A stretch of 64,000 nt of DNA from Podarcis gaigeae (taxonomy: Eukaryota). The position numbers and the translations under genes are program-made. The DNA is taken from the NCBI GenBank assembly GCA_964106915.2, contig OZ066914.1; one strand, given 5' to 3'. The notes beneath the pieces are model-generated. The model was not told where the DNA came from. It saw only the letters and a program-made list of their open reading frames with translations, and made no database searches. Shown here in pieces: positions 10,701 through 37,070 of this stretch (position 1 is its first letter; each line of letters starts with the position of its first letter).

Positions 10701-13700
10701 GCAGTAATAGATGGCAATGAAACATGCATTCTCCTCATCTCAGAGAAAATGATGGGGAGCTTGGGGCTACATGAAATAGCTAGTCCTACTATACTCTTTG
10801 CTCTTCCTTGCAACTAGCAAAAAGAGCATGCTTCTTTTTGAGAAGCAGGTTTTACGTTATTACTTAAATTCTAGAAAATTATTATTTGATATAGGTGTGC
10901 TGCTATTCTGTTACGACAAGAACTAATGTGGAGAATTGGCCCTCCTTTGCCTCTGCGTGTGCTCAGTGATATCTTGTGTCTTCTAGGACTCTGAGTTTAG
11001 TAATGCTGACCAGATGGATCTATATGACGACGTGCTAGCTGCCAGCTCACAACCTTCTGAAAGTTGCCCTAGCAGCTCCGAGCCACCACCCGAAAACCGC
11101 CAAGAGCAGTCTCCTAAGCCAAACAGCAAATCACCTGCTATCCTGTATACCTACAGTGGGCTGCGTAATAAGAGGGCTGCTGTTTATGTAGGCAGCTTCT
11201 CTTGGGTGAGTGCGTTCCATAATCGGAGCAGAAAGTAAAGGGCCTAACAAAAACAAAACATTTGGGTGGAAAGGCTGCATCTGCACTTTAATCTTACTGC
11301 AGATGCACTGTTCTTTAATAGAGTACAGTATAGAGCCCCATGTGGGTGGGTAGGTTTTATGCTGCTTGCCAACCTCAGTCCTCACAACACATTGGATAAA
11401 TAACTAGAAGCATTGTTCGTTATGACACATTGCTCTGTTTAGGACATTTTTATCCTGCTTTTCTCACAAAGACTCAACAGTGGCTTCAAATAAATAAGCT
11501 ACAGCAACATAGTATTCCGTACTATGCTAAAAAGCAACACATCTCAGAGTTGGAGAATATGATGCTCTTGCATTAGCAGGGTAGCTTTTAAGAGAAGAGG
11601 ATTTAACACATTTAAGATACATCAGAAAATATGATAATAGTAGAATTGAGGCCCTTAAAACGCCATGATAGAGACATTTTCACAAAATTTTCTGTAGCTG
11701 GCATACAGGTATGAGAGTTTTCTCCTATGAATGAATCTCTTAGGACCTGAGTAATTCATATTGGGCCTGCTGTGTCATGATTTAGGGTGTGTAGACTGAT
11801 CACTGCCCTAAGTGCATGCAGTTCTCTTTAATACCTGTGGTATGTGTTGGGAAAGGGATTGCTGCTGCTGCTCTTTCAATTACGTAGGTCTGTCTAGAAC
11901 TTTCATCTTCTAGGAAGATACATGTTCACACATGTACGTGCTCACACATCTGCAGCTCCAAAAGTGACTGTAGTGGGAGGGGTTTAATCAAATGTTCCTT
12001 CATTAGACTATACCAGGAACAGTATAGGAGCTTGAGAAGGATGAGTTCTCTTACTAATATAAGATGATGTGGGTTCTCTAAAAGGTTTCAGGTTATAATG
12101 TAATTTTCTGCTTCTTCATACATAGTGGACAACTGACCAGCAGCTGACCCGAATAATCCGTTCTGTGGGTGTTTATGATGTGGTGGAACTCAAGTTTGCT
12201 GAGAACAGAGCCAATGGCCAGTCCAAAGGGTGAGCACTCCAAGACTGCTTCATAAAAGGGCCCATCATGCGGGGCTTTTATTGTGGGAGGAACGATCTAG
12301 GGACCAGTGTGGTTGATAATGGTGTGCACATAAGTCTGGTTTTCTTGCTATTTTTTTAAGGTGGCCTTAGAAGTCCCTGTAACTGTCCGGTTTGGATGCC
12401 ACGGCCTTCAAACTAAATGACTACTTGTTATATGTGATTCACGAAGGCGGTGGGCTCTGTCCATTTCTGCAAGCGATCCCTTGTCAATGTGCTATTGGTT
12501 GCTGCTCTTAATGCAGCTTTAATTTGGAGGGCATGGAGCTGAAAATTCTGCACTGTTAATGACACTGTGCGTGTGGACAGCGGGGTTGGCCTGAGAAATC
12601 AATCAAATTGGGAATGAGAGAACCTTGGGCCTGTGGGCCACATCTGGCCGTCAGAGGATTCCCATCCAGCCTCCACAGCCTCTTGTTCTTGGCTCCTGGG
12701 CTGGCTGTGGAGGGCAGTGTTAGAAACTGGGATAGGAATACTAGGAGCCATGTGAGTGCCAAACCAAAATGTGTAGTGGGCCATTTTTATTGCTCCCCAC
12801 CACCACCAGACCAGGCAGCCCCACCAATAAAAATTAAAATTGCTGCTGGGTGACTCAGGAGGTCTGCAGTGTAGTGTGGCAACAAAATACAAGTCTTTTG
12901 CTACCTCTCTACCCTGCCAAACACCTAGGTCACCTGGCAGCGGGGCAGCAGCAGCAAAAAACAAAGACAGATGGAGATGCTAGGCACCAAAAGTGGCGCC
13001 TGGACATCATCAAGTTGCAAAAGGCCAATTGCAAAATGTGACTGGTGCCCGCTAATTTCAAACCCTGGTGGAGCGAGCTCTCTGTCTCCCAAGCTATCAC
13101 AGAAGTGCAGCAGATTGGAGGCACAGGAACTTCATCTGGATAAGTACTGCAGTGGGAGATAAAGGGATGAAACCCCTTGCCGGAGGGGGGCACTCACATA
13201 GGAACAAATGGGAGGTTTTCCCTCAATGCATCTGTGTGTATGCGAGAGAGATAAATGCAATGAATGGTGTGAGCTCATATGTGTGAGCAGATGAGGATGG
13301 GCGGGGGTGAGAGAGGGAGTGGTGTGGCCCTGTCTAATTTTTCCTCCCGTCCCACCCACCAATGCTATATAGCAGTGACATTTTGTAGACCTTGGGTGGG
13401 GGAAGATTTCTTGTCTTGGATTAGATGGTTTTCCTTACTAGAAGTTGCTGACAGTCTTCAGTTCTTTTTCCTCTGTGACCAGGTATGCAGAAGTGGTGGT
13501 TGCCTCTGAGAACTCCGTCCACAAACTTCTGGAGCTGCTACCAGGGAAGATTCTCAATGGAGATAAAGTGGAAGTGAAGTTGGCTACCCGGCAGAACCTT
13601 GCACAGTTTGAGGCTCAGGCTCGAAAAAGTAAGTTTAGATGGGGGTTGCGTTTGCTAAGTAGGGAACAAGGCAGAAATACAGGGCATTGGTTAGGTCTTA

Positions 13701-16700
13701 GAGAAACCTGAGCAGAGCTTTAAGCCAGAAACAATTTGGATGTGTGTGACTATCCAGGGAGTGTCCGGGTATATTTTCTTTTTCTGTTGCTGCTGAATGG
13801 ATGCCTAAGTAGATTTTATTATCCCCTTCTATGTTGCATGATTTGAGGCACGCTTCAAACTGAATGTGCTTAAGTTATTGAAGCTGCTATAGCTAGGACC
13901 ACCCCCAGCTCCTCTCTGAACCTTCTCCAGAATTTGTGCAGCCCTGAAGAGGTAAGGTGCCCTGAATTGGATGCAGTGCTCCAGCTGGGGCCTTACCTCT
14001 TGGTCATATAATTCATTTACTATTATTTATAAAACACATATCCCACCCTTTCTCCCAAAGGAGGACCATAATAGATGGCCCTGCTTGTCAATTTCTGTGA
14101 AAGGTATTCTGTTGAATGTACTATCTGACTTAGTAAGTGGAGAAGAGGACAGTTTCCTCTGTTGTTTGCAGAATTAATCTGGACAGTTAGGACCCACTGT
14201 TTTGTATGATCCTGTCATAGTCTCAACTGACTATAGAGTTGCAGCCTTGCCAGCTTTAGCACAGCTGCATTTTAATAGCCTCCATGTTCTGCCCTAGAAA
14301 TTGACGGAATTTCAGTGCAGAAAGTCATGTTGTTCCTATGTCCCTTATCTCCACGGGGTGTCATGGTGCCTGTGGTCCATTTCTCTGTGGTAGGAAGGTC
14401 AGTCATTGTTGCTGAATCATAAGATGAAGCGGAGCTGCTTTTAGCCCTCATCAAGCTTTTCCCTGTGAAAAACTGCTTAAAGGGGCTTATCTTATCTTCA
14501 CTAGGAGGTCGCGCTGGTGAATGGCAACGTCTGACAGTAACCATGGCACGTCACCATTTTTGACAAGGCCTTCGTAAATGACTTCCACCACTTTGTGATT
14601 CCTCGCCCAAAGGGCCTGAGAAATACAAATTTGTTGTTTTTAGTAATTTTATTTACACTCTGCCTCTCTCTAGCCCCCAAAGTGGCGAACTGTAAAGCAG
14701 ACAAGCCAGTACGATAAAGAAAAACACATGCACAAGTTAAACGTTTGAAGTTCTCTTTATTGCACTCTCCTATTTATCACAAAGGAAACCTAAAAGTGGC
14801 TTCCGTTATGTGACCATGAAGTGAATTTTTAATGTAATTCAGACACGTGCTGAGTTTGAAATATGAATGTTATTAGATTATCCCAGACTTGCTGTCACCA
14901 AGTCTCATGTGGTGATGGTATAACAGATTTCTGTGTCCCTAATTATTGTGTGTCATTGCAATTGTATGATCATGGTTTTTTTCTTTTGAAATGTTTCTCA
15001 GCTATATTTGCAATTAATTAATTTTGCCACATTGGGACAAGATCGCAATATGTTTCAAAATCCATCTTCTCAACATTCTCTCCATATTTTTTTTTTAATT
15101 CTTTTGATTATTGATTTCTTTCAATTATGTTTTAGATTCTCTATCTTGAATAAAGGTCTTAATTTTTTTTAAAAAAATAATGTATCAAATCTCATATCAT
15201 ACTATAGTTGAGCCTATTGTACATTAAAATTCCAAATTAAGATGACACAGCTTTTTTTAACCTGGAGTTTTTGAAATAATATATTTTTGCTTTACGCAGA
15301 CATTGTAAATCTTTGTAAATACTTCCTGTAATGCCCTTCCATATTATTGCCATCTTGGTTTGTGTCAAATAAAGTTGACTCTAAGTACAGTACTTTGGTC
15401 AGCATGGCTTGATTATTTCTCTGGGGTCAATAACTCTTCATTGGGAAGAATAAAGGAGTCATGTTTCCAGATTTAGGAAGCTTTCTGACTTTGAGGCCAA
15501 GCAACTGGTGGATAGTATTAATTGCCTTCCAGTACTTGGGTATTGTCCCCTTGTTTTTCTAACGTTGAATTTATTAAGAATGTCAATTTCTTAATTGTAG
15601 CCAGAAGTATTCATGACAACTGAATCTAGTTTAATTCATTAGTCAGGATCTGCTGATGTATCTAAAACTATATTGCTCTCAGAAGGACCATAAGTTTTCT
15701 TCCATTCCAGATAGTTGCTTATTTCAGTTGCTTATTTTATGTAGAAGGAGATGCAGTTTGTATTACAGATTAAGGTTCAGAGACTTCTCTGCATCTACAT
15801 TTTGTATTCTATGAGAATGGAAATGTTGATTATTTTCTGGATGTAGTGGAAAACACTCAAGTTTGCAGTAGGTGCTCAGGAAGTAGTTCAGTGACTGAAA
15901 AGTAGCAATATGTATATAAGCCTGTGGATATTTGCCTTTATATAAAGTAACGTATCCTCATATATTGGAAGGTAGTTTATATTGGCATATTAGGTTTTAA
16001 TATTTCACTTTATTGAAGAATTCTACTAAAAGAACCAAATGTTCTGCTGAGTGCATTCACTGAGCAGTAGGTTCCTGGGGTCATTATTTCAGGGGACAGG
16101 GGGAGGAGTGGGAGTTAAGCATATCTCACAAAATTATGGGTCTTGAGGATTCTGTATAATTGTGCAGTGTTAGAATGTTCATGTTTCCACTCATTAGAAT
16201 ACTTATAATAGGAAAGGAGTAGGGATAACACTATAGCCAATTAGTGATTTTACTGAAGACCATTCTTGCATAATCCAGTGCTTGTTAGCTAGAATTTCAG
16301 ACACATTTTACATAATTAGTTAAGAGAATTAGCTCAGTGAAAAGGCCATTCGTGTACAGTTTTGTGGCTGTTGCCTCCAGTTTTCAGAGGGTAGAACAAT
16401 TGCTTTGTCTGCTGAAGTTTCCATATTTAATCCCTGGCATCGCCATGTAGGATTGGAAAGAGTCTTCTCTGAAGTCCCAGAGAGCTACTGCCAGTCAGTG
16501 TAGACTATACTGAACAAGATGTGTCGATCACAGAATCAGAATTGTAAATGTTCTGACTTGGTTTAAGTCAACTTCCAAGTTCCTAGTCATCAAATGATAA
16601 CCCATTTGTGGTGTTACGTTTGCACAGTGGACTCCCATTAACACATTGAATTCTGCTCATGCAGCATTGGATACAACACCATCTATTTTAGTTGTCACTG

Positions 16701-19233
16701 TACCAAAGAGTGGGTTAGTCAAATATTTCCCTTATATTCAGCATGGTTTGATTAATTTTTATGCTATCTGTCACATTTTCGTTTTTTTCTCTTGAAGCTT
16801 CCTGATTTTGCTTTTCCTTAAATGAGAAAGTTCAATACATTTGTCTCTGATAGTATGTGATGCTCTAATCAGTTACATTAAAAATGAATATTTTAATATA
16901 TCTTTATATATAATATAACATACTCACTATGGCTGAGATGTAAACAACATAGACACCAGTTCAGATTTCACCTAGGCTATAAGCTCAGTCACTAGGTAAT
17001 ATTAGGTAAGCCACACTTTTTCAGTGTAAACACCTATCTACAATCTTTGCGATAAAGACCTGTCAAGTAGGATTATTAGCAAGTTTACTGTGCTAATACA
17101 TAAAGCATTTTGAACACACTATAAGCACTATATGAATGATAAGTATTACTTGAATGCTCAGGCAAAATTTATTTCACTGAAAGTGAACAGTGTAAAATAC
17201 ACTCAAGACATTCTAAGACCATAAATGAAATGTTCTCAGTTCAGTTTGGACACACTGCTATTGTAAATTGTAATTAAAGTTAAGCATGGATTTAGCATGT
17301 TATGCTGCCTGTCCATCTGACTCATAATCAGTGCATGTTACAACTATCTCTGTCAACTCAGCACACAACACTTAAGAGAGCTCTTACAGATCTCTTGGCC
17401 AAGACTGGGAATGCCCAGTTCCAGAGCAGGAAGGTATCTCTCTAGATACCTCAACATTTGCCCAAATCAACCCAAAAATCTGTGTGCAAATACCAGTGAA
17501 ACCTACCTTTTCTCACATGTATGAGATAAGAGTTTTGATATTTGGGCAAGGTGTTATTGCAATTCAGAGGGCATGGTGGTTGACATGGGTGTACTTACTG
17601 GAAAGCGGGGAGAGGGTTATTTTGTCAGAAAACTGACCTACCCAACTGCTACAGTGTTGAGCGCTTTTCCTCTTCTGTGATGTCTGACAGGGGTGCCTCC
17701 GAGGGCTCACTCAAGGGATTCCACCGACTCGGTAGATGGCCGAGCCACTCCGACAGAGAATGCTGTGCCGCCGCCACGCATTGAGAAGCCTCCTGTGTTG
17801 CCTTTCTTCAACCGCCCTCCTTCTGCGCTTCCTCTCATGGGGCTGCCACCTCCACCCATACCACCCCCTCCTCTTTCCTCAAGCTTTGGGGTTCCCCCTC
17901 CCCCTCCAGGAATCCACTACCAACACCTCATGCCCCCTCCCCCTCGACTTCCTCCACACCTCACTGTGCCACCTCCTGGGGCCGTGCCACCTGCGCTGCA
18001 CCTTAACCCAGCCTTCTTCCCCCCACCCAATGCAGCAATGGGGCCCCCGCCAGACACCTATAACAAGACCTCTGCAGCATACAACCACAGCAGGTGAGAG
18101 CAAGCCCATTCCCGGGAATCTGAGAAGAAAAAAAATCAAAACTAAGCAGTGCAAAGAACAGTAGCTAAGCCTCTTGTTTAGCAAGGCTGCAGACCTAATT
18201 CTCCAAGGGCTTAGTTATTTTGTTTTTATGCAAAGAGTGATGGTTCGACTAGACATGAAACCACCTTCTCGTTGGTGGTAGAAAATGCCTTGCATAGCTC
18301 TAGGGCACGACAGCTGACAACTTGGTTCTTAAAGGATGCTACTTAATGTCTGCTTTGGGGAGGAGGGCAGTACCTGGTCAACCACACATTGCTGTTTTGA
18401 AAGGCCTTGAATTGCCATGTCTATGAATAAGGAACTGTGTCATAGTTCTGCTTGAAGCTGTTTATCCTATGTGTGTGATGGGTGTGTGTTTGTTTCTACA
18501 GCCGGGAACTGGGCCCTTTGCCACCTCCTGTCAGTGAAGCTGAATTTGAAGATATCATGAACAGGAATCGAGCAATTTCCAGCAGTGCCATTTCCAAAGC
18601 TGTGTCTGGTGCCAGTGCAGGTAACCAGAGCTGGCTTTTGCTACCTCTTTCCATTTCTCGCTCCTGGCCTCATTCTTACCATGCCGCCTTTGCTCTGTTA
18701 TATTGCAGGGGACTACAGCGATGCCATTGAGACCCTGCTCACAGCCATTGCTGTGATTAAACAGTCACGTGTCGCAAATGATGAGCGGTGTAGAGTCCTT
18801 ATCTCTTCACTCAAGGATTGTCTTCATGGCATTGAAGCCAAGTCTTACAGCATGGGCACCAGCAGCAGCTCCTCCAGGTGAGCTTCAGGCACAGTTATTG
18901 CCAAGTCATCCAGCTACTGTCACTGATTTTGCTGATGAGCAAGTCTCAGTTGGGCTCTGGTCCGCTTCCTGGGCTTTGTACAGCCAGGTAGGAATAAGTG
19001 CTTTTGGTAGGGGAAAGGGTCTTGTTACAGCTTGCCAGTAACTAGATACCTCATTGTTTTCCAGAAAACGGCACCGGTCTCGGGATAGATCACCCAGTCG
19101 GTCTCGTGAGAGCAGCAGGAGGCACCGAGACGTCGTCCATAATGAAGATCGGCATGAAGACTATTTCCAGGAAAGAAGCCGGGAGCATGAGCGACATAGA
19201 GACAGGGACAGAGAAAGAGACCGACATCACTGA
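1723..19233 (+). CDS. CPSF7: Cleavage and polyadenylation specificity factor 7 (CFIm59), 460 aa, 8 coding exons
   Basis: Exons 1723..1776 ([18 protein letters not shown]), 10987..11205, 12126..12229, 13483..13628 (RRM: [15 protein letters not shown]...[17 protein letters not shown]), 17691..18093 (Pro-rich), 18502..18620, 18709..18877 and 19065..19233 (RS/RD-rich, TGA). All introns are GT-AG and phase-consistent; total 1383 nt. Confidence 0.97.
2865..3060 (+). mobile_element. Decayed L2-type LINE ORF2 fragment
   Basis: Translates to [15 protein letters not shown]...[14 protein letters not shown], resembling the region after the RT domain of L2/CR1-clade ORF2. Confidence 0.65.
4873..5151. mobile_element. 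PIF/Harbinger-like MITE
   Basis: Terminal inverted repeats GGTCACATTCA...TGAATGTGACC, flanked by TTA on both sides (4870..4872 and 5152..5154). Confidence 0.65.
8882..9118. mobile_element. Tc1/mariner-pogo-type MITE
   Basis: TIR CAGTGGTACCTCGCA...TGCGAGGTACCGCTG with TA on both flanks; internal repeated TCGTCTTGC units. Confidence 0.8.
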
Positions 19234-23528: not shown

Positions 23529-24341
23529 GACAGGTGCCATATTTTGGCTGGGTAGTAGCCCTTGTACAGCCATGGTTTTATGTATTGCTAAACTAGTTCC
23601 AAACCCACTTTATGTACACAGATTAAAATGATTTTTTAAAAGCTTCTATCTCTCAGTCATCTCCATTTAAAAGGGAGTGTCTGGTAGCAAGCCAAGGAAA
23701 GATTTGAGATCCTTGAGAATTTCTGCCAGTGTGAAATCAGTACACTTAATGAAGATTCGATGCTCAGCATCATTTTAAGTAGCTCCTTTAAAAAATATTT
23801 GCTCTGGAAAACATGAACAGAAATCACAGGTTTCATAAAAAGGGATAGGCATTATGCTGAACAGAGATGGGGAAATGAAGCCACGGTGCAAACAGATGAA
23901 ACTCAAACCCTTTGAAAGGGGATTGTGCCTTTCACGTGAAATTGAGTATTACAGGCAAGGATGCAAGGAAATATAATAGCGTATAAGGGCTTTCTGTCTA
24001 TGGCAGGAAAAGGTTCAGTTACAAGAATATTGTCCTGATTGCTAGTGGTATTCAGTGAAATGTTTCTGGGGCTCATAGGCTTGCCCAGATGGTTTGTGTT
24101 TCACCTTCCTGAAGGTTTGTCATACAAGGGTATTTGCCTGTGAGTGGCGGGTGAGGTGGTAGTACTTTCAGAATGCAGCTTGAGTGGTGAACAGTCTGTG
24201 GGAGGGGCTTAATGCTGAGTGGGTGGGTTTACCTGGTTGCTAGGTGATGATTGTGATCTAAGGGACCAGGATTAATCTCAAGTGAGCCCAGATAACTGGT
24301 CTGATGAATGGGTACCATTCAAGTCTCTTGTTATTCTCACC

Positions 24342-25810
24342 ATGACATACTCACTAGAATTTGGCCTTGTTAATGCGGCCAACCGGTACCTGACTGCTGA
24401 ACCTTTCCGTTTCCAGGTGGCAGCCACAGGCAAGCAACTGAAGCCTCGCCAGTTGTGGGTACTGCAGTTTGTGAGTCCACAGGGAGCTGGGGCAGCTGGC
24501 CCAGGAGAAGGGGCTGGCCAAAAGCTTCACCTGATCAGTGCACTGAAACGCTACTTGGCGGCTGACGCAAATGGAAAAGTCACCTGTGACCAGGACAAAC
24601 CAGGGCCTCAGACCTTCTTTCTCTTGCATCAGTATCCAGATGGCAAGGTGCTGTCTCTCACCCAGGCACAAGCATCCTATCTCTCAAGTGTAGCTTATGT
24701 CCGATATTATTGGGCTGGAATTCTGGACAAAGAGGGTTGGGTGTGGTTGGGTGGGTGAGACGGAGGGCAGAAGGTAGGAAAACAATGCTTAAAGTTGCCT
24801 CAATAAGGCCTCAAAACTATTCCGCTATTGCCCAAATGTGGGCCTCTTGTTTTGCTTACAAATGTTTTTTTACAATTAAGAGGCAGAAATGAGGGCAGGA
24901 TTGAGCTTGAGTTGCAGACTAGTTTGCTGTGGTGAGAAGCAGGGTCTTTTCTTAGTGTGCAAGTTTTTAGATTCTTACGGGTAAGTCCAGGCAGCAGATT
25001 CCTGTAAAGTGCATCAGGAAGAGTGTAAAATGTCCCTGGACTTCCCCCACCACCCCCCATGGTCTCCTTGGGAAGCCAGTCACATGAGCCAAAGCTCTTT
25101 GCCCCTGTCGGCCAAACAGTATGATAGTCAGCCACTATGGGCTGAAGGGGAGAGAATGTGTTTGAATAGCTTATTTGAGTCCCTGTGCCTGGTGGATCCT
25201 TCAAGGTGCCCTAGCCACTTCCCATCCACAACTGGAAACAACTGTTGCACAATGGAACTTGGGTGATCATGGCAACTCCATAAGCCAAAAGGTGTAACAT
25301 AATTGGTGTGATGATACCTGAATTTTATTCTGCCGTGTTCTTTGCTCTCATTGAGAGTGTTCCTGCTTTTCTTGTCTTGGGCAATGTAGCTGACCAGACA
25401 TCCTTCCCTCCCTGCAGGTGTCCTTTCAAAATGAACAGTCCAAGCGCTACCTGGGTGGAGCAGAGGAGAACGTCACTTGCTTTGCCCAGGCTGCCACCGA
25501 AACTGAAAAATGGACCCTCCACCTGGCTGTGCACCCCAATGTTGCCATGTACAACCCCAACAGGAAGCGTTATGTGCGGTGTGATGATAAAACTGGGGTG
25601 CTGCGCTGTGACCGTGACATGCCCTGGGGAGCTGAATCAGTCATCACTATATACTATGATTTCAGAGGTGGGTGGTGGCATTTTCCTATTTTGCTTTCAA
25701 TTGATACGTGCATTTTTCTCTCTAATACTGTAACACACATCTCCCACCCCCCCTTTGTTGGGGGAGCGTGTTAAAGAAGCAAAATATTCTGCTGTAGGGT
25801 TACACACACA

Positions 25811-25857
<47 letters not shown>

Positions 25858-28800
25858 TCCTGTTGAAGATGAGGACTTATAGCTACCATACTAACAAGAA
25901 AGTTGCTTCTTCTGAACTAAGGATTGTTTAAAGTTTTCTGTTATCCTCCCCAACTATGGAGCAGACACCTGGGGTAAGTCTGAACACCTGGAAAGACTTG
26001 AGAAATTTGAGAGATGGAGAAAGTCTGTACCGGTCAGAGGCTTTCTCCTCCCACAGTGAGAAAGTTGCTACTTTATTCTACAGATGTTTGTCTGCTTGTG
26101 ATTTTACCTGTACATGAGGATTTCTAAGTGCTACAGGTGGGTGGGGTGGCCTGGGAAGGCAGTAAGTGCTTCTAAGTGGAAGGTCTTAATTCAAAAAGTT
26201 TGAGTGACACTGCCTTATTTACACATCTCTATCCAAAAGCCACCCAAGCACCTTCTAAGATAGTCCTCTGTTATTGATGTGTGAAAAAGTTCAGTTTGAG
26301 TCATTTGCATCTCCTCCAATAGGTCTGGAGTCCAATGGTGAGAGAAGGCAATTTTCCCCATACATACCAGGTGAATTCAAATTCTGTTTACCCAAGAAGT
26401 CACTGTGGCTGGCAGGAATTTTGATTTCCTTAACATCATTAATTAGCTTGGGTAATTCTTAGAACTACTAATTGCCCTATGCAAGACTTTCTGGTAAGTT
26501 AGACACCAGTGCAAACTTTCCAAATAAGACAAGAAAGGGAATTGTCTGTACAGAGAAGTTTCCAAGTGCAAATCCTCTTTCCTGACCGTATTGATGTTGG
26601 AGGTTCCCCACTCTCTCACACACACTTTTAAGTGAAATTGCACACTGGGCTAAAGAATCTAATACAACCAGTTTTTAAAACACACATGTAGTGTGGATAA
26701 AGGTGTGTATTAGTGCAGATGAGAACATGACTTCAATCCCAATCTCAGCCTGCATGTGCCCATGGCACATCTCACTATACCTGGGTTGGGGCAATGGCCT
26801 CTAGCTTTATCAAGCACACACGTAAACCCCCAAAGTAACTATGCAAGAAAAATAGGGTGTAATCTACGAGGAAACAAATGCAGTGTCAGCACCGCCAACG
26901 CTGTACAAAGCTGAGACCCAATGAACGTCAACTTGCCTATCAGAACAAAGCACAGGGGGCTGTTTACACACATGTACAAATGATATATGAGATTCTGGGC
27001 AAGGGAATTACAATGGGAAATGTTAAGGGCGAACAGGACTAGGGTACTCTAAAGGGTTGGTGTTTGGAACTGCAGGCAGGGTGGGCCTGTGTGGCAATTC
27101 TGCAGTGAAACAAGCATCAACTCTGATGCTACTTTGTAAGACAATTGATTTGGAGATTGTTTTCCAGGACTAAACATCAAGCTGCTGTCAACCTCTCATT
27201 TCTCTCGCCTTTGTCTCCAGCAAAGAAGTATGGATTGAGGAATGGGGCTGGCAAGCTGTTGGCTTCCAATGGCTCACTGGTGCCAGATGTTACCCCACAA
27301 ACGTTGTACTCCCTGGAGGTGCATGGCGGCTTGGTCGCTCTGCGGGATGAGGAGGGAAAGTACTTGACTGGGCGAGAGGGTAGCATGAGAACCGTAAAGA
27401 TGGACAAACCTGGACGGGAGGAACTCTTCAGCATGGAATCCAGCCCTGCCCAGGTCTCTATGCGCTCTTCTTCTACTAACAAGTTCATTTGCTGCAGGCC
27501 AGGTAAGTCAGGAGAAAACAGCACTATCTATATTGCATTGCACTTTGTGAAGCCTCTGAAGCTGATTGGCTGTTCCTGTCTGATGAGATAGAATGTTTGT
27601 GACCATTCCACCTGCTCAGAAAATGAGGCACAGTGGTAGTCCACATTCTGCAAGCAATGGGGCAGTTGTCAGTTTGGTTGGGTAAAACTGAGATAAGACT
27701 GACTCAGGAGGCAGGGTGAAGGCTGGGAGGAGTTCTTAGAAGGTAGGTAAGCTTAGATGCTGGGACCTCAGAGGCAAGATGGATGAAGAGAGGGTGCAGA
27801 AGTAAGAAGCAGGAAAAGTGCACATACAATTGAAGTAGCAAGGATCCAGTAAGATTACGGTCCCTGAAAAACCCCACAGCATTTCTTATTAAAAGTGGTG
27901 TGACAGAAGTTCTAGGGAAGCTTGCACGTGACGTTTTGTGCTCTTAAACCAGCCTGCTCCAAAGATAAAGATAGGAAGGTTCAAATGATCCTAGGTCAGC
28001 TGACACACAGACAATGCCCCCATTCTCTGCACGATGTTTTCCTCTTTCAATCCACAAAACACTGATTTTAGCCTGCAAGGATTGGGCAATGGCATATGTA
28101 GGAATGCTGACCTAGGGTGTTTCTTCCCTGCCCCCTGCAGGTGCTGATCTCTATGCCAATGCTATGGCTGTTGGCAACACAGAGATCTTCCAGGTGCTGT
28201 TTGATGACACCACAAAGAAGGTCTGCTTCCGTAGCCACAGCGGCGCATATATGTCCTTGGTGAGTGTGCCTGCCACGCGTTACGAGGAACAGCAGTGATC
28301 AGGCAGGACCTAACTATGTTTCCTAACTACGGAGGACGGCAGCTCGTAGGTGGTAGAGCACCTGCTTTGCATGCAGAAAGCCCCAAGCTTTTTTCAGCCA
28401 CAGCCACTCATTCCAGTCTTGTCCCCAACCTCCTTCCGACTATATTCTACAATGGGCAACACTGAGACTAAGGAGGGAGGAAGCTGACAGGCAGTCCCAC
28501 CCCACGACTGGTTGTGAGAATGTGGGGACTGATCAAGGGCAGATTGAGGATGGTGGGGCAGGGCCCCTTTTGCCCAAGTGGATCAGCCTCCACTGGATAC
28601 ATCTGTGCCCAGATTGTGGTGCACCAACTTAATCTGGAATTATTTTAAATGTGAGCAAGGAGGTGGGTGAGCTGCATCCTCGACACGTGGCTGCGAGCAT
28701 TCACAAAAATTGTGGCCTGGTTCAAAAAACAAAACAACTTAAGCTTGAAACTTGATGTAGTAGAGGCTTTGCCACCTCAGGTGTTCACCAGCTCTCCCCA

Positions 28801-31800
28801 GATGAAGAAGATATATCTGCGCCGTGTGTGTATTAATACAGAAAGGCAGGCTGCAAATCAAGAGGATAATAATATAGCAAGCAGGGAACTGATAAAAGGA
28901 GGCTTGTTAAATAGCAGTAGATAGCTCTTGGTCCTGGACTTGTTTGTTAATGTTAGTAAGGACTGTCTTAGTCCTTTTCCAAAACATTTTTGTCAACTTT
29001 AGTGCAGGTGGGGGGAGTTACTCTATTCTACAAAGCAAAGCAGGGCATTATACACAATCCTCCTTGTGAAAAAGTGGGAAAAAAATATTGTACACTGAGG
29101 ATGGAGAACCTGTGGCTCTCGAGTTGTTGTACTCAAATGCCTATCGTCCTTGATCATTGGCTGGCAGTTATTACTCCAACATCTTCAGGGCCTCAGGTTT
29201 CTCATCCCTGCCACAGATGAAATATGTAAGAGTTCAGTAGGAATGCACAACTTCCTGAACAACCTCTTAACCTCTTAAGAGAAAGCTAACAGCTTAAGCC
29301 TGGAGGGCTGGAGACATCTTTTTCAGGTCTGCTATTCACTTACCTGGGAGTAAAACTTACTTATAAGTAGAGTTGAAGGTGATCTTCTGGCTGCATTGTT
29401 GTTCATGGTGTGCACATACACTATCTGCTATGGACCATGGTCAGAAATTTTACAGATTTTTGTTGTGCTTCAAAACTTATACTGTCTACATCTAACATAC
29501 CATTTAGAAATATTAATAGTTTGGCTTCAGTCTGGGCTATGGTTCACATAGTGCAACTTGAAGTGTGAAGTCAACAATAAAGTGGCTTTGAATAAAGCCA
29601 AGGTCCACCACCATCCCTATCTTGCTGATGCTAGAAACCCTCCACTTTTGGAGGTAACTACTGCTGGATGTGGGTGGCGCTGTGGGTTAAACCACAGAGC
29701 CTAGGACTTGCTGATCAGAAGGTCGGCGGTTCGAATCCCCACGATGGGGTGAGCTCCCGTTGCTCGGTCCCTGCTCCTGCCAACCTAGCAGTTCAAAAGC
29801 ATGTCAAAGTGCAAGTAGATAAATAGGTACCGTTCCGGCGGGAAGGTAAACGGCGTTTCCGTGCACTGCTCTGGTTCGCCAGAAGCGGCTTAGTCATGCT
29901 GGCCACATGACCCGGAAGCTGTACGCCGGCTCCCTTGGCCAATAAAGCGAGATGAGCGCCACAAACCCAGAGTCTGTCATGACTGGACCTAATGGTCAGG
30001 GGTCCCTTTACCTTTACTGCTGGACTAACCTCCCTGGTATTGAGATGCTCATGCATTGCTGTACTCTTGTGTTGTATCACCCACCACAATGGGATTCTCA
30101 GTCTTGATGCAGCACACAATACCTTCCACTGAAAATATATCAACATGGATCTCAGAACGTAGCTGATAAAGGGACTGCAGCAGGAGGTTTCTATCAGACA
30201 AAGTAAGCCGAAAGCACAAAAAGCACTTTCCAACGAATGCATCCTGTCTTTTGCAGGGTCCTAATGACTGTATTAACAGCAACACTAAACAGGACAGGAA
30301 TGTCTGGTTCGACATCCAGTACCAAGACCAAAAGGTGTGTCTCCGCATAGCAGACAAGCAAGTGTCCATGCGGCCCAATGGACAGCTCCTGGCAATTCCC
30401 AAAGCTGCAGGTACAAGTTGGTAGAGAGCTTCTCTTACAAGCACCAGGGCATCAGTGTGGACAGGTGAAGACAGCTAGGGTGGGAAGAGAGACTGCACAC
30501 TGCCAGCTGCAAATTAGCTTTAGGTAGTTCTAGGGGAAAGGAATGGAAGCGACAGCCTTGCCCTAAGTCCCTAGATAGCCCTCTAGAGGAATAATGTGGG
30601 GAAAGTGTATGCACAGAAACCAGGCTGTCCCTGGATATAAAATTGGAACATGGGGAGCCAACCTTAAGCTCATCCCATGAAATGGCTTTTTAGACACCTC
30701 AAGGGCTTCTTGTTGGAAACCTGCAACCAAAACTTTCATAATCTTGCTCCTGCAAGATGGAATGAGTTCTGTTTACACTCCCTTCCTTACACTTTGGAGT
30801 AGCTAACATCACTACAAATACAGCCTAGATGAAAGAGAAAAAAACACCCTAAGACTCACTAAAACACTGCCCCTCTGTGCATATAATCCTGGCCCCCAGA
30901 ACTGCATACCAAGTAGGTTGACACTGCTTCTGTAATATGATCTGGGAAGCAGTCAGAGAATGAGTTCCAGTTTGGGGAGAACCACCACCAGAAATAGCTG
31001 TGCAGTTGTTGTCCATAGTGGTTACTTGAATGAACTTTGGGGCAAATGCCACTGACAGTAGAAATCGAGATAAAACCCAAGGGAAGAACAGTATTTGAAG
31101 TCCAAGCCATTAAAAGCTTTCTGTGCCATAAACAGCACCTTGAATCAAGTCGGAAAGACTAGAGGGAGACATTGTGAATTCTGGGCCCCTGTTACAACAC
31201 TCAGCCTGGCTTCTCAGTGTGGGGCGATTTCTCCTGATCTTTAGCACTGAGGTTGACTTTCCCTGGGGAGCTGATTCCCTCTTGAGAGCAAAAGGAAGGG
31301 TGGCAAAATAGTTCTCTTTGAAAGCCAGGTGCGGCCAATGCAAAAGGTTTCCCTTGTACCTTCAGGGAAGAGTGAAGATTTCCTGCTGGTGCTGGTGAAC
31401 CGGCCACTGCTTGTCCTGCACAGTGATGCCGGCTACGTGGGTCTGTGTTCTGACATGAGGAAGTTGGAAGGGAACTGCGTCAGCTATGTTGCCAGCAGCC
31501 TGTCGCTCACCGAGGAAGGCTACTACAACTTCCAAGTTGGTTAGTATGTTTCCAGGTGGGACTAAGTATATTCCAAGGGGTTGGGGTCTCCTAGTATCTG
31601 TGTTGCGAGAGAAACATGACCTACTCGTAAATGGGAGCTGCCATCAAAGGATTTTTATAAAAACAAGCCTAGTTTATACGTAGCCATAAGAGGGAGCCAA
31701 AACTTGCTTTCCCAAACCAAAACAATGCAAGAGAGCGCATCATCACTATTTTCCCCCCTTTGCCATTTGTTTTGCTCCATGACCCCTGGACAATAGTTTC

Positions 31801-32328
31801 CTAGGCCCAATTGAGGATAAACTACTGTTCAGGTTGGATGGCCATCTGTCATGGTTGATTTAGCTGTGATTCCTGTGTTGCAGGGCGTTGGACTAGATGA
31901 CCCCCAGGGTCCCTTCCAACTCTATTATTCTAGGTGTCGGTCATGTTTTCACTTTATACATGGTTTCTTTCTAAACCATACCTAGTATTGCCATGACAAG
32001 CACATCCTAATTACCTGTCATTCTTTTACCTTGTAAAAGTCGGAGAGATCCAAGAGCTGGTCTTGCCACGCCTCTACCTTCCCTGACCCTCACCCTTCCT
32101 TCCACTAATTCTGCCACTTGACTTGCAGGCAGCAAGTACTGGGCTCTGGATAACGATGGACAGATCTTGGTAAACAGTGACCGTCCCAGCAATTTCACCA
32201 TCCAGTTTGCATCCTCCAGCTGCCTGATCATCAAAGCACCCAACAACAAGTTTTTTGTGGCTGAGCAAGGAGGCCGACTATGGGCAGGGGCTTCAGACGC
32301 ATCTGGAGCAACACTGTTCCATTTCTGA
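24342..32328 (+). CDS. Fascin-family actin-bundling protein (divergent fascin-like, 494 aa, 7 coding exons)
   Basis: Exons 24342..24647, 25418..25667, 27221..27502, 28141..28259, 30257..30410, 31366..31539 and 32129..32328 total 1485 nt, with no internal stop and six GT-AG introns in matching phases (0,1,1,0,1,1). Fascin motifs: FGLVNAANRYLTAEPF, RYLAADANGKVTC, RYLGGAEENVTCFAQ, EKWTLHLAVHPNV, RKRY, DRDMPWG, LRDEEGKYL, GREELF, DLYAN, LVNRPLLVL, ATLFHF-stop. Kozak caccATG with an in-frame upstream stop at 24273; AATAAA at 32355. Confidence 0.93.
25802..25852. repeat. (AC)n microsatellite
   Basis: Read directly; fascin-like intron 2. Confidence 0.95.
29666..30016 (+). mobile_element. Full-length Sauria-type SINE in fascin-like intron 4
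   Basis: tRNA-like head (GGTGGCGCTGTGGGTTAAA...GGTTCGAATCCC) and (ACCTTT) tail GGTCCCTTTACCTTTA. Flanking direct repeat TACTGCTGGA at 29659..29668 and 30015..30024. Confidence 0.88.
31830..31932 (+). mobile_element. CR1 LINE 3' end fragment
   Basis: GTTGGACTAGATGACCCCCAGGGTCCCTTCCAACTCTATTATTCT is a typical CR1 3' terminus. Confidence 0.7.
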
Positions 32329-32360: not shown

Positions 32361-33363
32361 CTTTTTCTGTGTGGGCTTACTTCATGCTTATCTCAACTAA
32401 TGCCCAATTGGCCCATGTGTTAGACCTCTTGGAAATGACCCTTCCTCCGTAGATCCTCCCTCACACAGGGCATACTTGAACTCTAAATGAAAGCTCTGCT
32501 ACCTACAGCAGACCCAAGCCAGGACCCTTTCATGTGAATTTCCTTACGCAAAAACTTTCTGTGCCTATGAGGTCCCTTCTGAACTGCCTTCATGCAGCTA
32601 GGATGATTTGCAAAGCCTCAGTTATCTTAAAGATGTGTACCTCTCTTCAGCCCAAGAGGGGTCCCCATGCTTCTAGGAGCACTGTTGTTCTCCCAGCGTA
32701 CCAATGTTTGTCTGAAGCTCCACATAGCTACAGTAGTTTAAAAATAAATATTTATTCCAAGGATGCAGTAGAAAACCAAGTATCACAAATTATCATTACA
32801 CACCAATAACAACACTGATTTGGGGGGAAGCGGCACAAGGCCTGCTGCCCTTATCCCTACCCCCATTCAGGAGGAGGGCACAGGAGGTAACACAACAATT
32901 AGGGAGGATGAGCAAGACTGCCCTCCTGAGTCACTGCACACATGCTAGAGTCTTGAGTTGTTAGAATGTACCACGCTGGGGAATTCAGAGGACACACCAG
33001 CTGCAGGCAAAGTCTGATTATTAGGTGGCATTCACTGGCCCATAGTCTTTTGACTTGCGAGAGTCAATTACCCAAGGTACAATGTTGGAATGGATCAATC
33101 GCCGCCCTCCAGGAGGATTGCAAGCTTAGTTAGGGTGGGTGGGTTTGTCATCTCATGAAAACTGTTTCCAGACACTGGAGACCCTGCTAATGGTGCTCTA
33201 CCTGAATGAGCTTGAAATGAGAAGTTGAGCCGCCTTCTTTCAGCTTATTGGGGGAATTGGACCCACACCTCATCTTGTTCCAGCCACAGAAATGGAGGGT
33301 TCATGCAGCCTCTCTCCAATCTGAAGAGCACACGGTTCCATACATTGCAGCCCACAAAGGTTC

Positions 33364-36300
33364 TCAGTAAGAGTCCAAGCTGCAGAAAATAGAGAGCGAA
33401 ACGTGAGGATCTTAGAAACAGCGACAGCAAATACCTCAGCCTTCTTACCCAATTTACAGTGGAACAGACTGAACACCTATTCCAAGGATGGGGAACCTGC
33501 AGCCCTCCAGATGTTGGAATCCAACTCCCACCATGGCCAATAGTCAGTGATGATTGAAGTTGTCTAGCAACATCTGGGGAGCCCATGTTCTATTCCATTG
33601 ATTCCCCTGTTTGAAGAAATAATCCAACCAACATAAATATATGATAAGCCACCTGTGCAATTTAGCATTACATCATTGAGCCTGAATCAATCAGAAAAAG
33701 AACGTCAAACTTGCATGTTCTCCCACAACAGCCAAGGAGGACTTCAGCAGGATTTTATGTTCTCTATTTAATTCTACTTTTAAAGAATCCTAGCTTAGCA
33801 TTATGTCTGAACTAGGAATCCTGGTTTAAAACTCTGGTAAGTGCCATAATAAATCAACTTCACACTATGGGTTATGAATTTGGCTTCTTAAACTGATCAG
33901 AGTTACAGTATACCAATTTCCAGAGAGTATAACAGAAAGGTTTGCATTCAACACAGCGCTAAGAAGAAAAATTTCTCCTTGTGCAATTGAACATTTTCCC
34001 CACCTGCATGCCCCTTAAATCTGCTCTGGGAATGGCATAGGGCACAGAAGTCCCACTGTACTAATATTAATCCTTGCACTAATGTGGATACTTGGTTGAA
34101 TATTGTCCAAGGCTAAGCTAACACATTTATTACAGCTTAAGCTAGTCCATGAAAACTTATGCCATAACTAATTTGATGCTTTTTAATGTGCCACAGGACT
34201 TTTGTTGTTTTAAACCAGGATTCTTGGTTCCAACATGATGCTAAGTGGGGATTTAAAAGTGAAAGTAAATCCTTCCAAGTCCTCCCAGCCATAAAGGAAG
34301 AGGATATGGGGACTCACACACGAGCCTGAAACTTCACTTAGCACTAAACCCAACATTACCAGTCAGTGTCTTAAAAAACAAAATCTAATCAATGCACATA
34401 AAAAAATATTTCCATAAAATACCATAATGGTAGGCAAGTAAAGTACCTGGAGAAGGCAGCCAGAGTGAGAACACCCAGTAACAGCTCCACAGCATAGAAG
34501 AGGAGGAGGATAGCATTAAGGATGGCCTCCAGCCGCAGAGCATAAGTCTGCAGCAGCAGATAATAGGCTGCCATCACTGCTGCTGGAAAGGTTAAAGCCA
34601 GACTGATAGCAAGTGGCACTTTCCGTTGACAGAGGTTCCCTTTTGAGCCTGCCGTACACAGCAAATATGAAAAAGAAAATGTATAGACCTGTTCAGCATA
34701 AAAGCCACAATATTTGGAATCTGAGGGCACAAAATGAATAGTTCTACTTTTCAGGGATCAGTTCTCATTTAACTAAATAAGTTAAAAAATTGTCCAGTAG
34801 CACCTTTGAGACCAACTAAGTTTGTTCTGGGTATAAGCTTTTGTGTGCATGCATACTTCTTCAGATACACTGAAAGAGAAGTCACTAGACCTTTATATAG
34901 AATGGGAGGTGGGTTGGAGTATTTCTCGGAAGGGTAGTAGGCGATGGGTGATTGGCTCAATGGGCATGGTAAACCTGTTGACGACAGTGAACAATTTTTT
35001 AAATTTTTTTAAAAATATTTTTTTTAAAAACAAATTATTTATTTCAACTGCATCAGACCAACACAGCTATCTACCTGAATCAAGAATCATTTAACTGAGA
35101 ATAAGGAATGGGATTTTGCATTTAACATTTGTACTGTAGTTCATAAGCTAGTCTCAGGTCAGGAAGGACAGTCAGACTGGATGAATGGGATCTCATATTT
35201 CCACCCACATAATGTTGTCTTGCCTCCTACCTACTCCCGAATTAGGGAATGTACCACAGAGCCCCTTTTTCAGCCTTTGGGCATCATTTCATTGGAGGCA
35301 CCTATTCCAGTTCAGCAGAATAATTAGGAAGGCCTGGAATGATGGGAGTGAAGGCACTGTCAGCAATTTACACTCTGCTCAACTACTCTACTCTCAAACA
35401 CCTTTGCTGTTGGAGAAGCAGAATTTATCAATGAGTGAACCACCACAACAACAATAATAAATTTTATTCATATCCTGCCCATCTGGCTGGGTTTCCCCAG
35501 GAGTCATCTTTTCAGGTCAAGTGCCATCAAAGATACTCACAAAATGGCAGGGGAGTGCACTACTCGTAAGAACATTTTTATTGAATACTCACCAAAAAAT
35601 ATCCGGGTCACTTCAATCCCAAGATAGAGAAAAAGCATAATCAGGTCCAAAGCCAAATTGGCAGAGGGGTAGGGCAACAGGAGTCCTAAGTGGGTGCAGA
35701 AATGGACACATGCATTAAGAGAACAGCAAAGCAACAAACACTGGGACATGGTTCTGAAAAAGGCTGTGAACTCTCACGCAGCTAGGTGAGAAATAAATAA
35801 TTACACTATCCACTTTGTTCTTTCACTTTCTTCAGGTGAGAGCCACAAGGTCAACGCGTAAAAAAACCCCTTCTGCAGGCAACCCAAACACATCATCCCT
35901 TCAAAGACTCACCTTTATAGACAAATATGAAAATCTCCAGCAGAAAATATGTTGCGTAATACCAGCCATTGAGGAACAGGAGAATCTCCAGAGGGGTGGA
36001 GGAGAGCTGGCGATCTAGGGGGTGAAACCAGAACATGATTATCTATGGGGTACACATTTTGTGTTCCACTCTCACCTTCTCTCAAAGAGGAGCAGTACAA
36101 ACTTTCTTGAGAGACTATATAAGGGTTCATGTACAATTCATCTTGTCCCCCTGCTTTCCAGCAGAATCAGAGCCAATGGCAATTCTGGTTTTCCCAGGAC
36201 TGCCATTTGTTCCAATCTATCCCAAGGTGGGTTTTCGGAAATGAGCAAGGCAAAGGGTGTGAGTCAAGCAGAAACTGCTGCTAAGAAGCCAAGCAGCAAT

Positions 36301-37070
36301 GAGGTCTCAGTTCTGTTCTAAACTCAGAGGTGAAGATTGTCAAAATGGAAGCCCTGAGATGACAACAGCCATTAGGGGACGCCAATATTCGTACTGGGCT
36401 CGACAAGGACAGAAAACACAAGCCCTGTGTGCAGCCACTCTCCATTTCGCCTTTCTTGTATTTGCACTGGACGTTGTAAGCTCAAAATTGCGATGCTGCG
36501 GCCTCACCACCTTAGCGTGGAACCTCAGCACATGGTCTAACATACCTCAGGCAAAGGGAAACCAACCAGCAGCAGAGAATAAAAACCCTAACACACCGAT
36601 CTGAACCCCTTGGAAGGGTCCAAAACCCCGTATTTGGGCAGCTTTATGCTAGGAGAGGGTTGCGAAGGGGCAGCCTCCCGCAGGACGTAGCGCCGAGTCT
36701 ACCACCCTCCTCTGGCAGGATGGTTTTTTCTGGGGGAGCTCAGCGCGAGAGTGAGCCAAGAGGCCCCGCACCAGGCTCTGGGGACCCGGGGGCCACTCTG
36801 CCTCCTTCCCCTTCGCTCCGGCTATTCCTCCCGCCTGGGGAGCGCTTGGCGGGATGCCGTCGGATCCCCGCCGTCGCTGCCGGGCTGCAGCCGGAGCCCG
36901 GTTCCCGTCCCTGCTGCTGGGCTCGGGGTGTCCTGGGCGGCGGGCCGGGCGAGCGGGGTGGGAATCAAGAAGAGCCGAGCCTTCCACGGGGATCAGTCGC
37001 GGTCACGTGACCTCGCAGCCCCCAGGACCCTAGAACGCTGCCGGGACCCCGACTTACTGCGAGGCGCCAT
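33364..37070 (-). CDS. TMEM216: Transmembrane protein 216 (ciliary transition zone), 141 aa
   Basis: Exons 37058..37070 (MAPR), 35913..36014 (QLSSTPLEILLFLNGWYYATYFLLEIFIFVYK), 35593..35685 (LLLPYPSANLALDLIMLFLYLGIEVTRIFF), 34447..34648 (SKGNLCQRKVPL...LTLAAFS) and 33364..33379 (SLDSY*). All introns GT-AG. Poly(A) signal on the minus strand at 32751..32756. Confidence 0.95.
34785..35085. mobile_element. Penelope-like retroelement fragment
   Basis: GTCCAGTAGCACCTTTGAGACCAACTAAGTTTGTTCTGGGTATAAGCTTTTGTGTGCATGCATACTTCTTCAGATAC resembles squamate Penelope terminal sequence (from memory). Confidence 0.5.

Follow-up and report, generated by a model that had tools for sequence, protein, structure and literature searches.

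A probable fourth jawed-vertebrate fascin paralogue between CPSF7 and TMEM216 in Podarcis gaigeae

The 64,000-nt stretch of Podarcis gaigeae DNA analyzed here (contig OZ066914.1; hereafter the window) very probably carries an intact, expressed fourth fascin paralogue of jawed vertebrates, which predates the split between sharks and bony vertebrates and has its place next to CPSF7, followed in bony vertebrates by TMEM216. Together with the mechanism and site of action proposed below, this is the best explanation of the data as a whole. For this gene, given the working name fascin-X, we document how the exons are arranged, that a relative splices them, that selection has been purifying, a clade and a locus of its own, and a predicted fold. 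Reviews of the fascins, a family of actin-bundling proteins, count only three in vertebrates; the fourth lineage suggested by an earlier sequence-only reading of the same DNA holds up, because it forms its own 100/100 clade at a locus that is conserved, is under purifying selection, and yields spliced transcripts.

Seven coding exons on the plus strand, within 24342-32328, join into a coding sequence of 1485 nt, or 494 codons plus TGA (Table 1), with the start codon in the context CACCATGA. The frame check found no internal stop and GT..AG ends at all six introns, confirming the uninterrupted 494-aa fascin and the canonical splice sites that had been read from the sequence, and the AATAAA at 32355 bears out the poly(A) signal. 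The span of all four beta-trefoils is likewise corroborated: the Podarcis muralis orthologue (XP_028593030.2), one residue different (L for F105), has four Pfam PF06268 stretches in one chain of ~490 aa. In the window, Pfam Fascin matches fall in exons 1, 2, 3, and 7, with a weak match in exon 4. Searches were made with single exons or with orthologues from databases, and the joined frame served for the frame check, the trees, and dN/dS.

Spliced reads over the six junctions had been proposed as a check. Four junctions (3-4, 4-5, 5-6, and 6-7) are exact in one contig from run X2 of a close relative, a contig whose RNA status is the tool's guess and whose comparison spanned 6 kb, with junctions 1-2 and 2-3 outside that stretch; these two agree with intron sites in four orthologues. 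The spliced contig is deep in one of the four runs compared; two others show faint spliced contigs. A putative cassette exon, absent from the earlier model, is new here: it has AG/GT ends, keeps the frame, and shares 83% DNA identity with the intron of the python Liasis, the same insert recurs in Lacerta models and in isoform X1 of Podarcis raffonei, and homologous inserts are present in python, colubrid, and gecko models. Introns 4 and 6 contain interspersed repeats, marked by a very high depth of contigs over 29666-30017 and 31831-31932. An Rfam search of 22000-38000 gave no match, and a repeat finder returned chance matches only.

Table 1. Features of the fascin-X locus (window coordinates)
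Feature	Position	Strand	Remarks
CPSF7, upstream neighbour	10987..19233	+	coding exons checked; RSLD_CPSF6 match; gene start further upstream
Upstream block (proximal promoter and 5' UTR)	24163..24341	+	conserved; GC/GT boxes
RFX X-box-like element (inferred binding site)	24236..24249	+	106 nt 5' of ATG
Coding exon 1	24342..24647	+	residues 1-102, most of beta-trefoil 1; Q32 at fascin-1 S39 position
Coding exon 2	25418..25667	+	residues 103-185; equivalents of H139, R149-K150-R151, D168 retained
Optional cassette exon	26323..26370	+	48 nt; adds 16 aa in beta-trefoil 2, giving a 510-aa form
Coding exon 3	27221..27502	+	frame, Pfam Fascin match, putative RNA contig
Coding exon 4	28141..28259	+	119 nt; 3' end is the phase-0 intron also in FSCN3
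Coding exon 5	30257..30410	+	frame, putative RNA contig, intron map
Coding exon 6	31366..31539	+	C398 at fascin-1 R398 position
Exon 7, coding part	32129..32328	+	ends in TGA stop
Proximal AATAAA	32355..32360	+	Liasis and Alligator likewise have AATAAA 16-30 nt past stop
Palindromic AATAAATATTTATT	32743..32756	.	candidate two-way poly(A) signal for fascin-X (+) and TMEM216 (-)
TMEM216, downstream neighbour	34449..37070	-	coding exons seen; tail to tail with fascin-X; Transmemb_17 match

The palindrome is identical in Alligator, and TMEM216-side contigs start at 32737-32758 in three runs; the second AATAAA, at 32743, may be the main 3' end of fascin-X.

The location between CPSF7 and TMEM216 is confirmed by the RSLD_CPSF6 and Transmemb_17 matches. 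CPSF7 of the window matches the upstream gene at the Liasis and Acipenser fascin-X loci, TMEM216 counterparts match at four orthologous loci, and the order CPSF7-fascin-X-TMEM216 is kept in python and sturgeon; past TMEM216 lie TMEM138 and then a cytochrome b561. Synteny was seen in Liasis, Alligator, Ascaphus, and Acipenser, and in Carcharodon the gene stands behind a CPSF6/7-type gene. Orthologues occur in other squamates (84-89% protein identity), turtles and alligators (53-61%), the basal frogs Ascaphus and Discoglossus, sturgeons, and paddlefish, and among cartilaginous fishes in sharks, rays, and a chimaera (40-48% for frogs, sturgeon, and sharks). The lineage is thus jawed-vertebrate-wide, so that of the "extra fascin lineage retained in squamates" proposed earlier the extra lineage stands and the squamate restriction falls. 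Word-limited searches found no orthologue in birds, mammals, or teleost fish, and judging by this absence the gene has quite probably been lost there.

dN/dS between fascin-X and its Liasis orthologue is 0.089 (bootstrap 0.06-0.12), far from 1 and in line with the purifying selection that had been anticipated, and all six exon differences checked in the putative RNA contig are synonymous. Automatic models occasionally fuse or mislabel fascin-X with CPSF7 (973 aa in Lerista; fragments in Gekko and Elgaria), as they might if it were a pseudogene or a set of CPSF7 read-through exons without a function of their own. To that reading we give practically no credence, given frames intact across >400 million years, a conserved upstream block and start codon belonging to fascin-X itself, the dN/dS of 0.09, and the spliced contig; pseudogene status in particular is refuted.

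In a maximum-likelihood tree under the site-heterogeneous model LG+C20+F+G4, fascin-X falls outside the FSCN1, FSCN2, and FSCN3 clades. It and each of these are supported at 100/100, and its grouping with FSCN3 at 95/98 (89/92 in a smaller sequence set). We omitted P0010, P0014, and P0195, FSCN1-like proteins whose origin is unclear; the first two of them had entered a first quick tree and comparison. Search scores show a gap between the fascin-X group and FSCN1/2, and a separate FSCN1 was seen in Lacerta and Liasis. All six fascin-X intron sites are identical from sturgeon to lizard. Those at 280, 320, 371, and 428/429 are common to FSCN3 with equal phases, as is the 119-nt exon. The intron at 320, of phase 0, is found in fascin-X and FSCN3 only; FSCN1 (gene structure taken from Lacerta) and amphioxus have a phase-2 intron at 330 instead. 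FSCN3 differs in having an intron at 38 and lacking those at 103 and 186.

The four common intron sites, and the label "fascin-3" that the chimaera orthologue carries in nr, are what one would expect of a relocated, divergent FSCN3, the alternative put forward in the sequence-only reading. FSCN3, however, is a separate gene, next to GCC1 in Liasis and next to a PAX gene in Heptranchias. The gene within the GCC1-ARF5-FSCN3-PAX4 block (PMC3759438) of python and shark is thus a different one from fascin-X, which lies outside that block. Both genes occur in Liasis, Eublepharis, Heteronotia, Hemicordylus, Varanus, Pelodiscus, and Scyliorhinus. Because python and shark keep FSCN3 at its usual site and the AU test gives p=1.4e-95 for fascin-X as FSCN3, relocation is rejected as having next to no chance of being right.

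Sequence and gene-structure comparisons suggest that fascin-X is instead the sister of the testis fascin FSCN3, which we regard as likely, and perhaps its whole-genome-duplication partner; both genes are present in sharks. A fourth paralogue from the FSCN1/FSCN2 side, for example a missing genome-duplication partner that later moved, seems rather unlikely. It would make the FSCN3 grouping a product of long-branch attraction, in keeping with the long stems (0.58 and 1.14), an AU p=0.51 for fascin-X with FSCN1/2 and lamprey, and a raw identity higher to FSCN1/2 (33-36%) than to FSCN3 (23-26%). Yet fascin-X has the derived phase-0 intron and lacks the ancestral phase-2 intron, as does FSCN3 in python and shark, the 95/98 support was obtained under a site-heterogeneous model, and the paralogous block that holds FSCN1/2 is a different one (PMC3560075). 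Of the fascins, only FSCN1/2 are treated in the SSTR paralogon paper. Lacertid fascin-X orthologues lie on contigs of 134-139 Mb, presumably chromosome 1, which hints weakly at the PAX4/6/10 quartet. That quartet includes anole chromosomes 1, 4, 5, and 6 (PMC4122933).

Fascin-X matches PDB fascin over its full length (E 2e-94). An AlphaFold model of the Podarcis orthologue, from an alignment that included FSCN1/2 sequences, reached pLDDT 93 and pTM 0.90, superseding one from only 9 sequences (pLDDT 62), and Foldseek aligned it to fascin-1 with TM 0.81-0.91 over ~500 columns; ESM Atlas returned generic fascin clusters only. Fascin-X is accordingly predicted to have the full four-trefoil fold, a two-lobed horseshoe as in fascin-1, with a 10-residue low-confidence loop in trefoil 1 of the reptile proteins that sets them apart from FSCN1. 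It has three intron sites in common with FSCN1, but stands at a different locus, with 34-36% identity and seven or eight exons versus five; identity to FSCN2 is 33-35%.

Solved fascin-1 structures, used for residue numbering and fold comparison only, and the published actin contacts (bioRxiv 10.1101/2024.01.03.574123) allowed residues to be mapped: contacts in trefoils 1 and 2 are retained and those in trefoil 4 changed. E27, F29, K43, H139, R149-R151, D168, K247, and K250 are kept or conservatively changed, whereas FSCN3 has lost R149/K150/R151/D168/K247-type residues. R398 is absent from every fascin-X member, and at the positions of K471, H474, A475, and V477 all or nearly all members differ from fascin-1. 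The S39 position is Q in all squamates, V in turtle and alligator, and I in intron-bearing shark copies, with S39 retained in Ascaphus, Acipenser, and the shark retrocopy; S274 is missing from most bony-vertebrate members, whereas FSCN2 retains both serines.

We infer from these residues that fascin-X would be a monomeric F-actin cross-linker, gripping one filament via trefoil 1 (E27, F29, and K43 equivalents) and a second via trefoils 2-3 (R149, K150, R151, and D168), with a remodelled trefoil-4 contact. Such bundling activity we favour with moderate confidence. A protein that keeps the fold but has given up bundling, either binding a single filament or serving as a scaffold, is a less likely alternative: the trefoil-4 half of actin-binding site 1 is changed, R398 is required for fascin-1 bundling and its mutants do not bundle (bioRxiv 10.1101/2024.01.03.574123), and the R149 equivalent is K, S, or T in several non-squamate members. 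The absence of R398 is not decisive against bundling, since position 398 is H in FSCN2 and G in amphioxus; FSCN2, a known bundler (PMC7698196), likewise lacks R398 and has Q rather than H at 474, and squamate fascin-X, unlike FSCN3, keeps the critical contacts E27, F29, K43, and R149. A bundling fascin-X of reptiles would lack the PKC off-switch at S39, so its activity would probably be set by tissue-restricted transcription and, in squamates, by the cassette exon.

The upstream block together with exon 1 is 82% identical to Liasis. Its X-box-like element, new here as a conserved promoter feature, hints at germ-cell or ciliated-cell expression: the 9-mer pattern, derived from two of the five sequences in which conservation was scored, recurs at -101 in Liasis, -94 in Alligator, and -84 in Ascaphus, with a variant at -117 in Acipenser, against a background of ~0.003-0.009 per 150 nt. 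RFX2 drives spermiogenesis genes via X-boxes close to the start site (PMC4498915). CRE-like sites adjoin the element in Ascaphus and Acipenser, an intronless fascin-X copy in sharks, which also have intron-bearing ones, points to germ-line mRNA, and the likely sister FSCN3 is testis-expressed (PMC7698196). We lean slightly towards differentiating male germ cells as the site of action, with ciliated epithelia as the main alternative. Under that alternative, which we rate as rather unlikely, the same gene and activity would operate not in spermatids but in the apical actin web and microvilli of multiciliated or sensory epithelia; the retrocopy, the CRE-like sites, and FSCN3 expression all speak against it. 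In its favour are the neighbours TMEM216 and TMEM138, both ciliary genes, and the faint spliced contigs of the two runs mentioned above. X-boxes are also a ciliogenesis element (PMC4498915). Fascin goes unmentioned in the elephant-shark cDNA paper and its supplements, which thus give no tissue.

A more complete scenario, possible though we advance it tentatively, is that of an "FSCN4": a genome-duplication sister of FSCN3 with an RFX/CRE-type spermatid promoter from sturgeon to lizard, which would bundle actin without a PKC switch through a different trefoil-4 contact and would have been lost independently in mammals, birds, and teleosts.

Fascin-X is not a new kind of system. RefSeq already predicts "fascin-like" genes in many species, among them its orthologues in Podarcis muralis (above), Lacerta agilis (XP_033013102.1), Anolis (XP_016851051.1), and Acipenser (XP_033912979.2), under automatic names (fascin, fascin-like, once fascin-3) and never as a separate paralogue; what is new is therefore recognition, not detection. 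We found no paper on FSCN4 or a fourth fascin lineage, in a search outside which most subscription papers lie, so an earlier mention is possible. The "cryptic" paralogues Bmp16 (PMC6395752) and Pax10 (PMC4122933), overlooked because model species lost them, are likewise ancient and evolve faster than their well-known sisters; they are unrelated proteins, and their duplication origin and losses rest on full synteny analysis, whereas the flanks covered for fascin-X span 10 kb.

A fourth ancient paralogue alters the fascin count and the family's history, as both FSCN3 and fascin-X predate the shark/bony-vertebrate split. Keeping most fascin-1 actin contacts within an FSCN3-like gene structure, fascin-X is a natural intermediate for understanding FSCN3 divergence, and it offers a natural experiment on whether bundling can proceed without R398 and the trefoil-4 contacts, and on how control works without S39. 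Having apparently been lost repeatedly, from mammals, birds, and teleosts, it is a candidate wherever the actin structures of sperm or ciliated cells differ between lineages.

The gene that the sequence-only reading had proposed, here called fascin-X, is present in the window with all seven exons, and its introns are GT..AG throughout with consistent phases. Joined, the exons give 1485 nt, encoding 494 residues followed by TGA, with no internal stop. The proposed location also holds: 5' of it lies a CPSF7-type gene in the same orientation, and 3' of it a TMEM216-type gene in the opposite orientation, followed by TMEM138 and a cytochrome b561. Searches used single fascin-X exons or database orthologues as queries, exons being joined for local computation only; exon 2 on its own matched the solved fascin-1 structure (E ∼1e-21).

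Exons of fascin-X in the window
Feature	Position	Strand	Remark
Coding exon 1	24342-24647	+	Pfam Fascin match
Coding exon 2	25418-25667	+	Pfam Fascin match
Coding exon 3	27221-27502	+	Pfam Fascin match
Coding exon 4	28141-28259	+	Pfam Fascin match, weak
Coding exon 5	30257-30410	+	
Coding exon 6	31366-31539	+	
Coding exon 7	32129-32328	+	Pfam Fascin match
48-nt cassette exon	26323-26370	+	AG/GT ends, adds 16 residues in frame

Some automatic models merge fascin-X with CPSF7 (Lerista, 973 aa) or mislabel it as such (fragments in Gekko and Elgaria), reflecting either annotation error or read-through across the gap at 19233-24342. The CPSF7 3' UTR, blocks of which python and alligator conserve, appears to be ∼4 kb long and to end near 23100-23450. 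Residue 105 (25424-25426) is F in the window, whereas the four lacertid database orthologues in the comparison, like most other members, have L; the F is either private to this genome or an error in the sequence.

With exon 2 as query, an exhaustive search returned eight proteins at 115–170 bits, the next scoring ≤80 bits. These matches, and profile searches from them, yield a group of orthologues (X group) labelled "fascin-like" or "fascin" in databases, comprising lizards, snakes, turtles, alligators, and the frogs Ascaphus and Discoglossus, as well as sturgeons, paddlefish, sharks, rays, and elephant shark. Podarcis muralis XP_028593030.2 matches the window protein at all but one residue, and the Lacerta agilis orthologue at all but five; the genome is thus that of a lacertid, and the gene was already predicted in close relatives. 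Identity decreases in parallel with species distance, from 84–89% in other squamates to 53–61% in turtles and alligator and 40–48% in frogs, sturgeon, and sharks; outside the group it is 33–36% to FSCN1/2 and 23–26% to FSCN3. The extra lineage suggested earlier is therefore upheld, but not as a squamate-only one, since turtles, alligators, frogs, sturgeons, and sharks have it. Birds, mammals, teleosts, coelacanth, and salamanders were not represented by X group members among the matches of our limited profile searches; as a true orthologue is expected to share more profile words than FSCN1, this is suggestive of loss or absence in these groups.

A maximum-likelihood (ML) tree of 59 proteins (LG+C20+F+G4; trees without mammal or bird sequences) recovered four vertebrate clades, FSCN1, FSCN2, FSCN3, and the X group, each with 100/100 branch support. 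The alternative raised initially, a relocated, divergent FSCN3, was rejected when squamate X and squamate FSCN3 were forced together (AU p=1.4e-95), and FSCN3 occupies its own locus in Liasis and the shark Heptranchias, beside a GRIP-domain gene (GCC1) and a PAX-homeodomain gene, respectively; GCC1-ARF5-FSCN3-PAX4 is a known gene block (PMC3759438). In a profile search with FSCN3, separate fascin-3 proteins turned up in coelacanth, axolotl, frogs, turtles, and many squamates; six species among these matches also carry fascin-X, and the catshark Scyliorhinus likewise has both. The shark FSCN3 beside PAX4 (Heptranchias locus L008:10001-30840) shares its intron sites with python FSCN3 and has one GC donor; a true FSCN3 in sharks implies that FSCN3, too, is as old as jawed vertebrates. 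In Liasis and Acipenser, fascin-X is flanked by CPSF7 and TMEM216; it is followed by TMEM216 in Ascaphus and Alligator, and preceded by a CPSF6/7-type gene in white shark. Its six intron sites and phases are common to sturgeon, frog, alligator, python, and the window. With its own clade and its own conserved locus, fascin-X is well supported as a separate, fourth vertebrate paralogue, an additional member of the known fascin family.

The X group joins FSCN3 with support of 95/98 in the 59-protein tree and 89/92 in a 27-row subset, both stems being long. A topology in which it joins FSCN1/2 and lampreys instead is not rejected (AU p=0.51), but a phase-0 intron at residue 320, evidence independent of the tree, is common to fascin-X and FSCN3 (python and shark). 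In lizard FSCN1 and amphioxus fascin its place is taken by a phase-2 intron at residue 330, so the phase-0 intron is derived. FSCN1/2, in a different chromosomal block, are a known genome-duplication pair (PMC3560075). The region of PAX4 is one of a quartet that arose by duplication, found on anole chromosomes 1, 4, 5, and 6 (PMC4122933). Fascin-X and FSCN3 may be a second genome-duplication pair.

Contigs from four sequencing runs (RNA status presumed, tissue coded) were compared with window 27000-32950. A single 2133-nt contig of run X2 (depth 213), from a close relative, spans four of the six junctions (3-4, 4-5, 5-6, and 6-7), each exactly at its modelled GT..AG site. One spliced junction is seen in each of runs X5 and X6 (depth ∼3), and run X1 yielded low-depth, intron-containing pieces only. 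Such spliced joints cannot derive from the fascin-X locus as DNA. The contrast between X2 and the other runs suggests tissue-restricted expression, although contig depth is a poor measure. In all four runs most read depth comes from high-copy interspersed repeats, located in introns 4 and 6 (29666-30017 and 31831-31932). All six exon differences checked between the X2 contig and the window are synonymous, and comparison with the python Liasis gives a dN/dS of 0.089 (bootstrap 0.06–0.12), in line with the purifying selection anticipated; alligator comparisons gave 0.22 and 0.13, with dS near saturation.

Sharks and rays carry an additional, single-exon fascin-X copy of 1464 nt (L009:10001-11464) at another site, which clusters with their intron-bearing fascin-X in the ML tree and is thus a retrocopy. 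It is intact (487 aa, ∼55% identical to its parent) and retains S39 (fascin-1 numbering), but its trefoil-2 basic patch is eroded.

Long isoforms of Podarcis and Lacerta contain the same cassette-exon insert, and python, colubrid, and gecko have homologous ones. Conservation with python extends ∼180 nt 5' of the ATG. This stretch holds an X-box-like element at -106 (window), which recurs at -101 (Liasis), -94 (Alligator), and -84 (Ascaphus), and as a variant at -117 (Acipenser; background <0.01 per 150 nt); the pattern was derived from the window and Liasis, leaving only Alligator, Ascaphus, and Acipenser as tests. CRE-like sites adjoin it in Ascaphus and Acipenser, both motifs being recognised by their consensus. 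The alligator element lies 94 nt 5' of an in-frame ATG at ∼10253, equivalent to the start in other species, so the 582-aa alligator model (L003:10001-10255) probably starts too early. RFX2 switches on spermiogenesis genes via X-boxes near their start sites; ciliogenesis, too, is under the control of RFX factors (PMC4498915). The X-box-like element, FSCN3 expression in testis (PMC7698196), and the shark retrocopy together point to male germ cells, where fascin-X may well act, ciliated epithelia being the alternative. A palindrome, AATAAATATTTATT, lies between fascin-X and TMEM216 (32743-32756) and is identical in alligator (L003:16595); it may terminate both transcripts, although the contigs carry no strand information, and this candidate two-way poly(A) signal was not seen in the python, frog, and sturgeon loci. 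TMEM216 itself has a full palindromic X-box, GTTTCCATGGTAAC (37381-37394), ∼310 nt 5' of its start codon, in keeping with a ciliary gene.

A structure model of the Podarcis orthologue (alignment of 101 sequences; pLDDT 93, pTM 0.90) superposes on fascin-1 over its full length (TM 0.81–0.91). The sole low-confidence part is a loop in trefoil 1, ∼10 residues of low-complexity sequence that reptile fascin-X has in addition (residues ∼46–56; window 24480-24520). Cryo-EM of fascin-1 on actin found E27, F29, K43, R149, and R398 critical, S39 being the inhibitory PKC site (bioRxiv 10.1101/2024.01.03.574123). Aligned to fascin-1, lizard fascin-X retains E27, F29, H139, R149, K150, R151, D168, and K247, has R for K22, K43, and K250, and replaces S39 with Q (Q32), S274 and R398 with C, and H474, A475, and V477 with Q, G, and R. 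R398 is absent from all X group members, but since FSCN2 carries H at this position, the loss alone does not exclude bundling. Loss of S39 is not universal, as Ascaphus, sturgeon, and the shark retrocopy retain it. Most of the trefoil-2 basic patch is gone from FSCN3 but present in fascin-X, which is thus the more canonical of the two. Judged by these residues, fascin-X probably bundles F-actin; it would act as a monomeric cross-linker whose trefoil-4 contact is remodelled, and the reptile proteins would lack the PKC off-switch.

A current review counts three vertebrate fascins (PMC7698196); we found no description of a fourth in the open literature, and fascin-X orthologues in RefSeq carry automatic names, a case similar to the "cryptic" paralogues Bmp16 (PMC6395752) and Pax10 (PMC4122933). 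The mechanism outlined here is specific and offered as a proposal; fascin-X itself is a real finding, and a wider one than the sequence-only reading stated.
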